Source: Paramicrosporidium saccamoebae KSL3 (lineage: Eukaryota > Fungi > Cryptomycota). From it: a DNA stretch of 17,109 nucleotides. Positions within the stretch are counted from its first letter, which is position 1. The number at the start of each line of letters is the position of its first letter. Below are positions 75 to 5,549 of the stretch, one piece after another. The translations under genes and the position numbers were made by a program. Where the stretch lies: assembly GCA_002794465.1 (NCBI GenBank), contig MTSL01000122.1, positions 1 to 17,109 of the forward strand, in the 5' to 3' direction. The notes under the pieces were generated by a model. It did no database searches and was not told where the DNA came from. It saw nothing but the letters and a program-made list of their open reading frames with translations.

Positions 75-149
75 TTCGAGTGGGGAAGGCGCGTATAATA
101 TCTGTTATTTCAAATACAACTCTCGTGACAGCTTGTACCTGGCCTGGCA

Positions 150-3100
150 ATGAAAGGATATCCATGCAACCTGGTACAGAGTGGAAAGATACAGGATGCC
201 TCATTGCATGTCCGTAGACCATTCAAGAAACGTCTCTATGTAATGCCATTCGTCGTTGCTTACAGCTCGTGGGTCTTGCTTGCCGCGTATTTAACAAGTG
301 TGGGTCGCTGGGAGGATTTGTGGTATGCATTACTCGTGGCTATCGCAGGAGTTCATTTTCTGACGGTAATGGCGTGTCAGTGGAGTGTCAACTTTGATGC
401 GTTTGTTACGTGTTACTCTGCGGGATTGGATTATGCCGAAATGATACTGGTGTCGCCACGGGAGCATGGCGGAAAGGCCGCCTTGGCGCCCCTCAACCGT
501 AACGCAGGAGAGATGAACTTTGTGTTCCAACGAATGAAATTTATTTACCGGGAGAACAAGAAATGTTTCAGCAAGCTGGAATATCCTAGCAGTCTTCTTC
601 TTGGCGATTATGACAAGGCCACTGGACTGAATGAGGCGCAGGCTGAGAAGGCAAAGACTTATTTTGGGAAGAATCGTTTTGAGATGCCAATGCCGACGTT
701 TATAGAGTTGTTCAAAGAACACGCAGTGGCGCCTTTTTTCGTCTTCCAAGTCTTTTGCGTGGGATTGTGGTGTCTCGATGAGTTTTGGTACTATTCCGTG
801 TTCACCTTGGTGATGCTGGTAATGTTCGAGTCGACAGTGGTTGGACAGCGTCTGAAGAATATGACAGAATTCCGGGCCATGTCCCTGCCGAATGTTGACG
901 TCAAAGTGAAACGTTCTGGTAAATGGGTGTCGCAAAAGACGGAAGAGCTGCTTCCGGGAGATCTAGTGTTGCTGGAGGGGACGGGCGGAGAGGAGATTAC
1001 GGTGCCTTGTGATTTGGTTCTGATTGATGGAACTTGTATTGTCAATGAGGCCATGATATCGGGCGAATCGACTCCCATGTTGAAAGAGTCTATTAGAGAG
1101 GCGAGACAGGAGGAAGAATTTGAGCGACCTTTGGATCTGGACTTGGACCGCAGTCATTTGCTCTTTGGCGGGACTAAGATTCTGCAAATCACCAAGAATA
1201 CGGAGAATGGATGTGTGGCCTTTGTGATGAGAACTGGCTTTAGCACTCTGCAAGGAAAGCTGGTGAGAACCATGATGTTTACCAGCGAGAGGATGACGGC
1301 CAACAATTTGGAGGCCTTTGCCTTTATTCTGTTTCTGCTCATCTTTGCCCTAGCTGCGGCGGGCTATGTACTCTATTATGCCTGGAATGATCCTACTCGA
1401 AGCAAATTCAAGCTGCTCCTTGAAGGTGCACTGATCATTACTGCCGTAGTCCCTCCAGAGCTGCCGATGGAGCTTTCATTGGCGGTGAACAATTCATTGA
1501 TGGCGCTTAGCAAGTTTGCCATCTTTTGTATGGAGCCCTTCCGCATTCCGTTGGCTGGAAAGTTGGATGTGTGCTGCTTTGACAAGACGGGCACCCTGAC
1601 GGGAGAGAATTTGGTGGTAAAGGGAGTGGCAGGGATTAATGATGACCACGAGGCAGTGTTGTCGGACATTGAGAATATTCCGACAAACACGCACATGGTG
1701 ATTGGCACATGTCATTCGCTGTTCAAGGTTGGAGACAAAGTGGTAGGTGATCCCATGGAAAAGACTGCACTCGCTTTTGCCAAGTGGACAATGTCCTCCA
1801 ATGACACCTTGCAGAACGGAAAACGCACGGCCCGCATCTTGCATCGCTTTCCCTTTTCCTCGGCGCTGAAGCGAATGTCATGTCTGGTGCAGACAGGCTC
1901 ATCTATCATGGTCACATGCAAAGGTGCACCTGAGGTGGTGGAGGCAATGTTGACAAATATTCCTTCATGGTATCGAGAGGCATTTACCCATTTGGCACAC
2001 AGCGGCGCCCGCGTGTTAGCTCTGGCCCACAAGACCCTCCCATCGACATTTTCCAATGAGCAAGCTAAACATTATCAGAGAGAAAAGGCAGAGTCAGGAC
2101 TCACATTTGCAGGATTTCTGATCTTTCATTGTCCCCTCAAGCCCGACAGTAAGGAAGCAGTGCGGGCCCTGAAAGAGTCGCTGCACCACGTGGTTATGAT
2201 TACCGGCGACAATGTGCTCACGGCGGTTCATACGGCCTTTGAGCTGGAGATGGTCCGAAAACCAGTACTGCTGCTGCAAGAGAGTGGGGAGGGGGTTGAG
2301 GCTGGACTTGGAATTGGAGTCGACATTTTTGACCGGCACGATCCAACTGCCGTCCCACCGAAAATATTTCTAACTATGGGAATGGACTTTTCTGGATACG
2401 ATTTGGCAATGACGGGAGGGGCGGTTGATATAATGGCCAAACGCAACCAACAGCTGCTAAAGGAGATTATAACGCGCGTCACTGTGTTTGCACGTGCTTC
2501 TCCGTCGCAAAAGGAACTGATCCTCACTACCTACAAGACCCTGGGCCACACGACGTTGATGTGTGGCGATGGAACAAATGATGTGGGCGCACTGAAGCAG
2601 TCACACGTGGGAGTGGCGTTGCTGGATGGAAAGCCAGAGGATTTGCCCAAGATTATCAAACAGATGCAAACGGTGAATATGAAGAAGCGACAGATTGCAA
2701 TGGAAAAGTCGCGTTTGGCCATGGAGCAGAAATGGGCGGGGAATATTGATGGCGCAGGTAACTTGGATACCCGGCGGAGACAGTTTGAAATACAGAAAAA
2801 GATTGAGGCCATGACGATGAGTTTGGAGGAAGAGGAAGCACCAATGGTGCGACTGGGCGATGCCTCGGTGGCAGCACCATTTACCTCGAAAATTTCCACC
2901 ATCAGTGCCGTGTGCAATTTGGTGCGTCAAGGCAGATGCACATTGGTGACGACGATGCAAATGTACAAGATCCTCGCCCTGAATTCGCTCATCTCTGCCT
3001 ATGGCCTGTCAGTGCTGCATCTCGAGGGCATCCGATATGGCGATTTCCAAGTTACTGTGACCGGAATGCTATTGGCCTCGTGTTTCCTCTTCCTCAGCAA

Positions 3101-3639
3101 AGCTCAGCCCATTGAAAAGTTGGCTGCCAAACGTCCCCAACCGAACATTTTCAATTGGTACGTATTGATGAGCGTCCTACTGCAATTCCTGCTGCATGTG
3201 TCAGTGCTGTATTATGTGGTCAGTGCGGCATCACGGTGGTCATTTAAGATTTGGGTGGATGAGAATACGCGATTTGTGCCCGGCCTGGTGAATACGACTG
3301 TCTACCTGATCTCGCTACTGATGCAAGTTTCCACCTTTGTCGTCAATTATCAGGTATACTTTTATCGACAATGACTCATTCTGTTAGGGACGTCCGTTCA
3401 GAGAGGGATTATTGGAAAATCGGCCATTGAGGAACAGTTTGGCCATGGTCAGCGCCATTGCTGTGGTGGCTGCCAGCGAACTGTATCCCGAATTCAACGA
3501 ATGGCTGCAATTAGTGCCCATGCCGCCGATGGTGCGGATGAAGCTGCTGGGAGCCATGGCAGTGGATTTTGGAGGCTGCCTGCTTATCGAGTACGTGTGT
3601 GAGCGCTTTCTCTTTGACTCTCGGCCCCGCATTCAATGA
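150..3639 (+). CDS. SPF1: P5A-type ATPase (Spf1/ATP13A1 ER transmembrane-helix dislocase), ~1151 aa
   Basis: Motifs: CCFDKTGTLT phosphorylation site, P5A signature VVPPELPMELS, SGES actuator, MITGDN and MCGDGTNDVGAL. Exons are 150-3353 and 3388-3639. Removing the 34-nt intron 3354-3387 (GTATAC...TTAG) restores the conserved NYQ|GRPFRE junction and joins ORF 3412-3639. Confidence 0.95.
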
Positions 3640-3835
3640 ACTATAGACTATGAGCAAGTTACGGTAGTTAAAGCATTGATTAGGAATTCATAAATGTATG
3701 GAATCATTAAGTGTGACATTATTAAATGTGAATTCATAAGCGTGCGGGCTCGCTATTTGGGGACATTAAGAGGGGCATCTATGGTTTATAATTAAATTGG
3801 TCAGCTTTGGTTCATTGTCAAGCTGAAATTCGGAT

Positions 3836-5073
3836 CTAATTAGTATTTGCTTGTATCGGCTTGTAATAGGAAATGCATTCGAGTAGGGATGCCCAGTCGA
3901 TGCTATTTGTGCCATCCTCCAGGTCGATGGGTTCGTCATGGACAATCCAATGGGCAGTGTCAAGCTTCTCTGGGTTACGAGTCACCTTTCCACCACCGGC
4001 AGTAATGAGTAGGGCTAGATCGGATTTTTTTGGCGCTGGTGCCCTAAACGTTCCCTCCAAGTGAAACGAAAGCCCCTCAAATAATCGCGCCCCTGTTGAA
4101 GAAATGGACTTTTCGACTGCATATGTGGCGCCCGCCACTTCATCGCCTGTAATCAGAAATGGCGTTTCATCGACAAACTTGTCGGCTGACAGAGATGCAA
4201 GATACCAATCGTAGCTGACAATTAACAGTCCATCTAGCAGTCCGCGAAGATATTTGACAGTCCGTGGACAGTGCCGTTCGGCGTTGCAATGGCTGATCAG
4301 ATGCGTTACATCTGGCATATGGCGGGATCTAAGAGTGGCCTTTACGTGTCCAATCTTGTCGTGTGAAGACGTAATGATATCCTAAGAAAATTAGTAGATC
4401 ATTATGCCGTTGATACCCTTTGATCCTCGCTCAGCCCAGTACTTAGAAAGACGTATGTCTTTTTCCTGGATCTGGATCCGGATCTATTGTCTGTCCCACT
4501 GGAGTCGTCTCTACTGCCTGTCTTACTGGGTTTCTTACTGGCTGCCTTACTGGCTGTCTTACTGGCTGCCTTACTGGGTGTCATATTGAGTGTCTTTTCA
4601 ATAGGGTTGGGCCTGTTAGCTGCTCTTATGCTGGAAGGTGTCCTTGGCTTCTTTGCGCTATGAACTGTTTCCACTAGTTGCAGCGACGATTTTTTCACAG
4701 GAGTTTTTGCACTGCGAGTCATTTCTACCATTTGCAGTGGTGACTTTCTAACAGGCGTCCTGGGCGTCTCCAATCGCAGCGCCCCCAATTCCGATGCTGG
4801 TGTTTTTACGCTCGGTGACGTTACAACACTGGCGAGCTTTCGGACGCACCCGACAATGGTGCCATACATGGCGTTTCTTCTTAAATTTTTGATTAGGAAG
4901 CGCGTCCCGCACCGAGGACACTGGCGTCCTGTAATGCATCGCCTATTCATCAATGATGGCAGACATTGTTACTGACAAAAGGTGTGCTCGCATTCTCCAA
5001 TAGTATACGGGTTAACTTGCAGACCTGAGCAGACGTGACAGTTCAGGAGGGCGGCAAGACGCGCGAGCGACAT
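3836..5073 (-). CDS. BRCA1/BARD1-like protein: N-terminal C3HC4 RING plus C-terminal tandem BRCT, ~390 aa
   Basis: Exons (minus strand) are 5073-4973, 4942-4417 and 4381-3836. Introns are 4972-4943 (30 nt, GTAACA...ATAG) and 4416-4382 (35 nt, GTATCA...CTACTAA...TTAG). The spliced RING reads CHVC-x12-CEHTFCQRC-x5-CPRC. BRCT1 contains YVFLSTGLSEDQ...VTHLI...RTVKYLRGLLDG...IVSYDW, and BRCT2 contains RLFEGLSFHLEGTF...LITAGGGKV. The total of 1173 nt is in frame. Confidence 0.85.
4521..4580 (-). repeat. Coding 12-nt tandem repeat, 5 copies (xSKx tetrapeptides in the RING-BRCT linker)
   Basis: Plus-strand units are tcttactgggtt / tcttactggctg / ccttactggctg / tcttactggctg / ccttactgggtg, encoding TPSKAASKTASKAASKKPSK. 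Confidence 0.85.
4651..4758 (-). repeat. Coding 54-nt duplication (2 x 18 aa) in the RING-BRCT linker
   Basis: TPVRKSPLQMVEMTRSAK is followed directly by TPVKKSSLQLVETVHSAK. Confidence 0.75.
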
Positions 5074-5118: not shown

Positions 5119-5549
5119 ATGATGCTTCGACTATTCCGTTCTTTTTCGACAAGCAGACCGGTGGATGCGGTGCAAAGGCTTTATTTAGGCAATTTATATC
5201 GTCTCACCGGAAGGGTAATCGTTCATAAATGGTTTGTTACGTGTAGCAAGTTCCGGTTGAATATCAGTTCGACCAAGTGGAGACGACGAGCAATGTGGAT
5301 AGTGTGAGTGAAGAGGGCGTGGGTAGAGATTTGAGTGGTGTGAGTAAAGAGAGTGTGGATAGAGATTTGAGCGGGGTGAACAAAGAGAGCACGGAAAAAG
5401 AGGGCATGTACAAAGAAAGTGTTGACAGCCCTGCTACATCTACTATGACAAATGCCGAAATGGCCAAAGTCATTGAATCTACACTGGGACCCACTCAAAT
5501 ATTGGCCAAACCGATAGTAAAGGGACGCAAAAAGAAGGCAGCCAAATAA
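5119..5549 (+). CDS. Small hypothetical protein with a mitochondrial-presequence-like N-terminus, ~132 aa (weak resemblance to ATP synthase subunit h/F6)
   Basis: Exons are 5119-5214 and 5247-5549. The 32-nt intron 5215-5246 (GTAATC...GTAG) joins the two supplied ORFs in frame. The N-terminus MMLRLFRSFSTSRPVDAVQRLYL is Arg/Ser-rich and free of acidic residues up to D16, and the protein ends in the basic tail KGRKKKAAK. The family call is weak. Confidence 0.65.
5304..5400 (+). repeat. Coding 36-nt tandem repeat, about 2.7 copies (VS-E/K-E-x-V-x-RDLSG)
   Basis: Units are gtgagtgaagagggcgtgggtagagatttgagtggt (5304-5339), gtgagtaaagagagtgtggatagagatttgagcggg (5340-5375) and a partial third copy from 5376. 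Confidence 0.8.

Follow-up and report, generated by a model that had tools for sequence, protein, structure and literature searches.

What is encoded at positions 3836-5073 of the Paramicrosporidium saccamoebae DNA analysed here, where a first-pass annotation made from the sequence alone had proposed a single, possibly ancestral BRCA1/BARD1-like protein hidden by two very short introns? The stretch, hereafter the window, comprises 17,109 nucleotides (positions 1-17,109 of contig MTSL01000122.1, assembly GCA_002794465.1) from this parasite of amoebae, a member of the Rozellomycota. Our reading, to which we give a probability of roughly 0.65, is that the locus is a functional three-exon gene, and that its product belongs to a BARD1-type, ankyrin-less lineage of early-diverging fungi and would act as a subunit of a predicted heterodimeric E3 ligase.

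The locus comprises three open reading frames on the minus strand, placed as in the first-pass annotation. Joining 5073..4973, 4942..4417 and 4381..3836 gives 1173 nt in frame, i.e. 390 codons plus a stop, with an in-frame TAA immediately upstream of the ATG at 5073. The complete C3HC4 RING (C12, C15, C28, H30 and C33 from the first exon; C36, C42 and C45 from the second) exists in the spliced product only, and retention of intron 1 would bring a stop right after ...EHTFCQ. This intron contains a TTGAT branch-like site 9 nt ahead of its AG, and intron 2 carries CTACTAAT followed by TTTTCTTAG.

Both junctions could be compared with those of related contigs drawn from public assemblies of read-archive and metagenome data (L001, L002 and L003), whose proteins share 42-43% identity with the window protein. 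The gene caller began after the RING in each of the three, the RING exon sitting just upstream, behind an intron of 41, 49 and 33 nt, respectively, at the same position and in the same phase as intron 1. The homologue P0160, found on a genomic contig with neighbouring genes, has no intron at this site and reads CGHTFCQPC / CGHTFCQPCLMDK straight across, and at the intron-2 site all relatives are uninterrupted, reading YVFLTTGLNEDQK. Because relatives either share the position of intron 1 or read through it, and all read through the intron-2 site, the three-exon model, with its frame open over 390 codons, is confirmed at the level of sequence comparison, as the first-pass annotation had supposed. 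The 33-nt RING intron of L003 (622-654; P0004, the relative in ENA) has no in-frame stop, and the caller read through it, leaving 11 spurious residues (YARQPLHLIPR) in the RING of the database protein.

The public annotation gives another picture. NCBI model PSACC_01716, a hypothetical BRCT protein of 274 aa, starts at M105 and has neither the RING nor the first BRCT1 strand, having taken out a 71-nt intron and with it VFLSTGLSEDQR, which forms that strand and the phosphate-binding loop. The uninterrupted YVFLTTGLNEDQKIIFKASYNKIG of the relatives agrees with the window junction, where YVFLSTGLSEDQR is followed by DIITSSHDKIG, and contradicts the 71-nt intron. Judged against these relatives, PSACC_01716 is mis-annotated and the locus encodes a complete RING-BRCT2 protein, so the gene had indeed been hidden from annotation; its public model is corrected here from 274 to 390 aa. 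The P5A-type ATPase gene of the window has a 34-nt intron of its own (3354..3387), from which we take micro-introns to be the norm in this genome, and introns of 30-35 nt point to systematic mis-annotation in assembly GCA_002794465.1.

The predicted protein consists of a RING with flanking helices, a disordered linker of 118 aa and a tandem BRCT. A Pfam scan of the 390 residues detected BRCT at 195-270 (6.3e-07) and BRCT_2 at 309-380 (6.4e-08); of the RING models, zf-RING_6 ('zf-RING of BARD1-type protein', PF14835; 6.7e-08, 32.7 bits) scored best, ahead of zf-C3HC4_2 (24.2 bits). No ankyrin repeats were found by Pfam in this protein, and residues 76-193 are predicted to be disordered, in agreement with the earlier claim that such repeats are missing. 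All eight zinc ligands are present and do not vary among four homologues. An AlphaFold model based on an alignment of 34 homologues has pLDDT values of 91-97 for residues 1-75 and 85-98 for residues 190-385, falling below 50-51 for residues 80-186, and places the RING-flanking helices at residues 3-9 and 58-75, the N-terminal one being short (about 9 residues).

In the tandem BRCT, T202-G203 and R249-T250-x-K252 align with the phosphoserine pocket of BRCA1 (whose counterparts we take to be S1655-G1656 and R1699-T1700-x-K1702) and are invariant in four close homologues; across the 34 homologues K252 is invariant and R249 and T250 are at least 90% conserved. By alignment the pocket is intact, as claimed at first pass. 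The linker contains 21 Ser, 14 Lys, 12 Pro and 12 Thr among its 118 residues, with eight S/T-P sites. Part of it (4507-4582, minus strand) is a 12-nt tandem repeat of 6.2 copies with 82% matches that encodes (SKxA)n. A linker motif (VKTPASELGALRL; VKTPASELGALRLE at residues 79-92, 4768-4809, minus strand) recurs in two relatives, L003 (IKTPASELRALKLR) and P0160 (SKTPASELAALALA), the remaining linker being unalignable, and may have been conserved as a short site for docking or phosphorylation.

To which family does such a protein belong? In a phmmer search against PDB sequences the top match was BARD1 (7e-14), with both the RING and the BRCT matched, while the BRCT of BRCA1 reached 2e-11. A four-sequence profile run against the sequences of solved structures again placed full-length BARD1 first (E 3.6e-28, both ends matched); it scored 61-73 bits with the BRCTs of BRCA1 and BARD1, followed by MCPH1, MDC1 and Brc1. 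Among solved proteins, BARD1 alone matches the window protein at both ends; the match takes in residues 2-74 with the flanks included, and the helix after the RING aligns ungapped. Structure comparison is consistent with this, since Foldseek returned the tandem BRCTs of BRCA1 (E 7.7e-16, target TM 0.79) and BARD1 (E 8.8e-14, target TM 0.78) ahead of MCPH1 and MDC1. From these profile and structure matches we conclude that the window protein is a member of the BRCA1/BARD1 family, so that both the RING-linker-tandem BRCT layout and the family proposed by the first-pass annotation hold. Rad18, Pes1, Dpb11 and MCPH1 were rejected as identities, none matching both domains.

Within the family, the question becomes which of the two paralogues the protein represents. 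An exhaustive profile search over 1.84 billion representative proteins recovered 2304 relatives, with E values below 1e-30 for 70. Once the close relatives are set aside, the top matches form three groups: RING + ankyrin + BRCT2 proteins with the canonical BARD1 layout, e.g. from the sponge Oscarella (group 1); RING + BRCT2 proteins with no ankyrin repeats, 520-850 aa long, from Mucorales, Mortierellomycota, Zoopagomycota and Calcarisporiella (group 2); and proteins with a BRCA1-like RING, namely plant BRCA1/BARD1 with a PHD-like domain, proteins of Balamuthia and Willaertia and the Mortierella claussenii protein named 'Breast cancer 1, early onset' (group 3). The same search returned a 1247-aa RING-BRCT2 protein with a PHD-like domain (P0039) that also carries a mid-protein GNAT acetyltransferase domain (576-660), unusual for the family. 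A further side observation comes from L004 in a eukaryote assembly (GCA_977009605.1), where at 476-4341 an intronless gene for a 446-aa RING-BRCT2 protein with the BRCA1-like 11-residue spacing adjoins a 795-aa FHA + BRCT gene.

Spacing between zinc ligands 2 and 3 separates these groups: it is 12 residues in the window clade as in groups 1 and 2 (including all ankyrin-bearing BARD1s among the matches listed) and 11 in group 3 and in human BRCA1. The window RING reads CHVC-SGLQVNPYTIGE-CEH, compared with C-SRC-TNILREPVCLGG-CEH in human-type BARD1 in PDB. Group hidden Markov models (HMMs), for which the controls sort correctly, scored the window RING at 62.8 for the fungal 12-spacing set, 61.1 for ankyrin-bearing BARD1 and 44.5 for the BRCA1-like set, the last of which contained no animal BRCA1, human BRCA1 having been compared through the solved-structure searches only. 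For the RINGs of the three relatives the corresponding ranges were 71-88, 56-64 and 51-64, and the window BRCT scored 117.5, 131.5 and 114.4. Distance-based trees (neighbour-joining, bootstrap) of RING plus BRCT recovered the window clade at 98%, its union with the fungal set at 54%, the split between 12- and 11-residue spacing at 52% and its union with the BRCA1-like set at 8%. The traits typical of BRCA1-type RINGs are also missing, the window protein having a spacing of 12 rather than 11, Val at the E2 contact and a RING that ends CPRCG. On balance, and with moderate support, the window protein is best placed as the Rozellomycota member of a fungal ankyrin-less BARD1-type lineage, which is not BARD1 in the strict animal sense.

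Several observations weigh against this placement. The bootstrap values at the level of subtype are only about 50%, and trees of the BRCT alone give no resolution, nor do those of the RING alone. Scores of the RING by itself are unspecific, those of TRIM21, RING2 and PCGF equalling that of BARD1, and among human proteins TRIM21 (41.1) slightly surpasses BARD1 (37.6) with the window RING. The RING of L001, which ends CPECK, scores 42.7 bits with human BRCA1 and 39.1 with BARD1. The zf-RING_6 score of the window protein lies below the Pfam gathering cut-off of 35; three relatives gave 32.6, 28.6 and no match, and BRCA1-type proteins reach 21-30, so this model was rejected as a discriminator of BARD1 from BRCA1, separating the groups too weakly. 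Lastly, the residue at the main E2 contact is hydrophobic in 18 of 18 fungal 12-spacing proteins but in only 11 of 28 animal-type BARD1s, which is more in keeping with a subunit that binds an E2 than with a silent one.

This last point bears on the first-pass proposal of a single-copy, stand-alone BRCA1/BARD1 protein, either older than the split of the two genes or left behind after loss of the partner, that would work as a homodimeric E3 with its own E2 surface. We consider it unlikely. Hydrophobic residues occupy the contact position in all seven proteins of the window clade and all 11 of the fungal 12-spacing set, the BRCA1-like CPECK end and marginal preference of the L001 RING for human BRCA1 would fit such a protein, and the parasite genome is small and reduced according to the genome paper, which also reports an almost complete meiosis gene set. 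However, Mortierella has both gene types. The RING of the M. claussenii 'BRCA1' scores 62.9 bits with human BRCA1 and 32 with BARD1, whereas a BARD1-like 12-spacing RING from Mortierella scores 46 bits with human BARD1 and 22.9 with BRCA1; judged by these RINGs, early-diverging fungi carry both BRCA1-type and BARD1-type genes, and the duplication would therefore be older than these fungi. The window clade sits with the BARD1-type set, and the idea of a single ancestral protein is not supported. Moreover, Lys follows the last RING ligand in 30 of 39 BRCA1-like proteins (CPLCK); the window protein has Gly there, and the residue is not conserved.

No second paralogue was seen in word-indexed homologue searches, but these yielded close relatives only, even with a domain-only profile of 38 sequences, and missed well-annotated fungal orthologues, so that little weight attaches to this negative. 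For P. saccamoebae, a survey of early-diverging fungi published in 2024 names BRCA2 (PJF18267.1), RAD51 (PJF17429.1) and a 'BRCA1' (PJF17061.1). The BRCA1 tree of that survey contains Mortierella proteins other than the BARD1-type ones found here (in strain GBA39, KAF9138777.1 as against KAF9144038.1), and those of BARD1 type from Syncephalastrum, Lobosporangium and Thamnocephalis are absent from it. Since the tree is without these proteins, PJF17061.1 may be a second, BRCA1-type gene, although it may equally be this same locus caught through its BRCTs.

A second alternative makes the window protein the BRCA1 orthologue itself, i.e. the catalytic, E2-binding subunit, which we hold to be improbable. 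It draws on the BRCT region, which as a single sequence scores 42-47 bits with BRCA1 and 30 bits with human BARD1, and on the BRCA1 BRCTs being the top Foldseek matches; residue 14 is hydrophobic, R249 is the equivalent of BRCA1 R1699, which is absent from vertebrate BARD1, and one fungal orthologue is labelled 'RING-type E3 ubiquitin transferase BRCA1' in UniRef. The RING argues otherwise, as its spacing is that of BARD1, it fails to reach E 0.01 with human BRCA1 while scoring about 37 bits with BARD1, and its lowest group score is the one with the BRCA1-like HMM; a true fungal BRCA1 (P0147) is clearly distinct, and the tree support for a union with the BRCA1-like set is the 8% given above. 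Nor does the pocket discriminate, because R-T-x-K is also kept by non-vertebrate BARD1s. The BARD1s of sponge and other invertebrates read CPRT[IL]KYL at this site, as the window protein does, and vertebrate BARD1 has diverged there. The motif pairs quoted at first pass, which gave the impression of a mosaic with a BRCT1 resembling BRCA1 and a RING and BRCT2 resembling BARD1, are present in the PDB-sequence alignments, but the mosaic is only apparent: it arises because vertebrate BARD1 is derived at this motif, which non-vertebrate BARD1s share with the window protein.

That the locus encodes some RING-plus-BRCT protein from outside the family, akin to Rad18, Pes1, Dpb11 or MCPH1, or is a decaying pseudogene with only apparent exon joins, is extremely improbable, for although RINGs are promiscuous in searches and the joins rest on comparison rather than on RNA, both protein ends are matched by BARD1 only, the tandem BRCT ranks BRCA1 and BARD1 over MCPH1, MDC1 and Brc1 in sequence and structure, the zinc ligands and pocket residues are kept in at least five homologues with common gene order and a common intron position, and the spliced frame is open throughout.

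If the protein is a BARD1-type subunit, its two RING-flanking helices would pack with those of a BRCA1-type partner RING into a four-helix bundle, as in human BRCA1-BARD1, and this pairing would create a heterodimeric ubiquitin E3 ligase. The first-pass suggestion that a partner RING may be needed is taken as supported. V14 corresponds to I26 of BRCA1, where the main contact with the E2 is made and where 34 of 39 BRCA1-like proteins have Ile; the RING ends CPRCG. Since the contact residue is hydrophobic, the BARD1-type subunit of fungi may still be able to bind an E2. The tandem BRCT would dock on a phosphorylated partner (pSer-x-x-hydrophobic type) or on damaged chromatin, and the basic, S/T-P-rich linker probably serves nuclear targeting and kinase regulation. 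In animal BARD1 the ankyrin repeats read histone H4 unmethylated at Lys20; with no ankyrin domain, the window protein would not be expected to read H4 in this way. The complex would serve homologous recombination and meiosis, beside BRCA2, RAD51 and the meiotic genes kept by the parasite. A bolder version, which we rate as rather unlikely, would have the BARD1-type subunit catalytically competent in Rozellomycota and perhaps in early fungi generally, and in Paramicrosporidium possibly a partnerless, homodimeric enzyme of 390 aa. Were it true, the window protein would be the smallest self-sufficient ligase of the BRCA1/BARD1 family.

Table 1. Coordinates of the gene model and of the domains of its predicted product in the window.
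Feature	Position	Strand	Description
Exon 1	4973..5073	-	ATG at 5073; N-terminal helix and first half of the RING (C12, C15, C28, H30, C33); ends after base 2 of codon 34; equivalent exon upstream in L001-L003
Intron 1	4943..4972	-	30 nt, phase 2, GTAACA...TTGATGAATAG, ends ATAG; splits codon 34 after its second base
Exon 2	4417..4942	-	Second half of the RING (C36, C42, C45), C-terminal helix, disordered linker, first strand and loop of BRCT1 (YVFLSTGLSEDQR)
Intron 2	4382..4416	-	35 nt, phase 0, between codons 209 and 210, GTATCA..CTACTAAT..TTAG; relatives without an intron here
Exon 3	3836..4381	-	Rest of BRCT1, inter-BRCT linker, BRCT2, stop codon (3838-3836)
RING and flanking helices	4819..5073	-	Residues 1-75, interrupted by intron 1; C3HC4, 12 residues between ligands 2 and 3; pLDDT 91-97
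Disordered linker	4465..4818	-	Residues 76-193; rich in S, K, P, T, A, R; pLDDT 40-51
BRCT1	4133..4464	-	Residues 194-292, interrupted by intron 2; pLDDT 85-98
BRCT2	3854..4096	-	Residues 305-385; Pfam BRCT_2 309-380
Phosphoserine pocket	T202-G203 4440-4435; R249-T250-V251-K252 4264-4253	-	Alignment to the BRCTs of BRCA1 and BARD1

The gene is flanked on both sides by annotated genes. The P5A-type ATPase gene (132-3639, plus strand) is convergent and downstream, as it is in all three related loci. Its NCBI model (1140 aa) ends at 3602; an alternative model with a different 3' end, closing at 3639, has a C-terminus that aligns to relatives up to the last residue, and the NCBI version is probably another mis-splice due to micro-introns. 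On the other side, an NCBI-annotated gene of 125 aa (5119-5549, plus strand) lies head to head with the RING exon, its start 45 bp from the ATG; it has no match in Pfam and contains a 36-nt tandem repeat at 5302-5390.

How new is such a protein among fungi? Published work finds model yeasts to be without BRCA1 and BARD1, whereas other fungi retain them; BRCA1 has been reported in Mucoromycotina, Mortierellomycotina, Entomophthoromycotina and Zoopagomycotina, and the BRCA1 tree legend of the same paper names Rozellomycota. In the literature searched we found no paper discussing a fungal BARD1, but NCBI already holds BARD1-named proteins for Mortierellomycota, and the novelty is reduced, as the first-pass annotation had itself foreseen for such a case, since clear orthologues are widespread in Mucoromycota, Mortierellomycota and Zoopagomycota. 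As predicted here, the window protein is the first of BARD1 type to be modelled properly in Rozellomycota and an unusually compact one, similar genes being already widespread in early-diverging fungi. It would extend the BARD1-type half of the BRCA1/BARD1 system to a lineage adjoining Microsporidia, and it fits the view that early fungi retained an animal-like recombination toolkit that was lost in yeasts. With 380-430 aa, a short linker and no ankyrin domain, the proteins of the window clade are the most compact complete family members in this search, which could suit structural and biochemical study of the conserved core (RING pairing and BRCT pocket). Current understanding of the family is left unchanged by this protein, the value of which lies in the annotation fix and in a minimal family member rather than in a new kind of protein.

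Among known systems, the plant BRCA1/BARD1 proteins (Arabidopsis-type, about 650-1100 aa), found by the same profile, resemble the window protein in their N-terminal RING and C-terminal tandem BRCT but differ in carrying, ahead of the BRCTs, a zinc domain resembling PHD (PF13771) and in a RING spacing of 11. BRCA1, both human and fungal (KAI1318181.1 of M. claussenii), shares the RING-linker-tandem BRCT layout, the BRCT1 motif CxRTxKYxxG..SYxW and a hydrophobic residue at the I26 position, and its tandem BRCT fold compares with the window model at a target TM of 0.75-0.81; BRCA1-type RINGs, in contrast, combine a spacing of 11 with an Ile contact and a Lys after the last ligand, where the window protein has 12, Val and Gly. 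Animal BRCA1 further has a long central region and a coiled coil, with nothing similar in the window protein.

Human BARD1 (PDB 1jm7_B for the RING; 2nte and 3fa2 for the BRCT; 7lyc and 8off on nucleosomes) has the same 12-spacing RING with helices, the motif GxCEHxFC and the S/T-G and T-x-K pocket. Animal BARD1 nonetheless reaches about 770 aa with four ankyrin repeats between RING and BRCT, its E2-contact position is variable where the window protein has Val, and the vertebrate form has lost the Arg that the window protein keeps as R249. The closest counterparts are the ankyrin-less RING-BRCT2 proteins of early fungi, the best-scoring group for the window RING, for which no experimental study was found in the literature searched. 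They share with the window protein an N-terminal 12-spacing RING with its helices, the hydrophobic E2 contact and a C-terminal tandem BRCT with R-T-x-K. They are larger, however, with 520-850 aa and linkers of 300-520 residues against 390 aa and 118 residues in the window protein, the RING of which has a second loop 5 residues shorter even than in its own close relatives.

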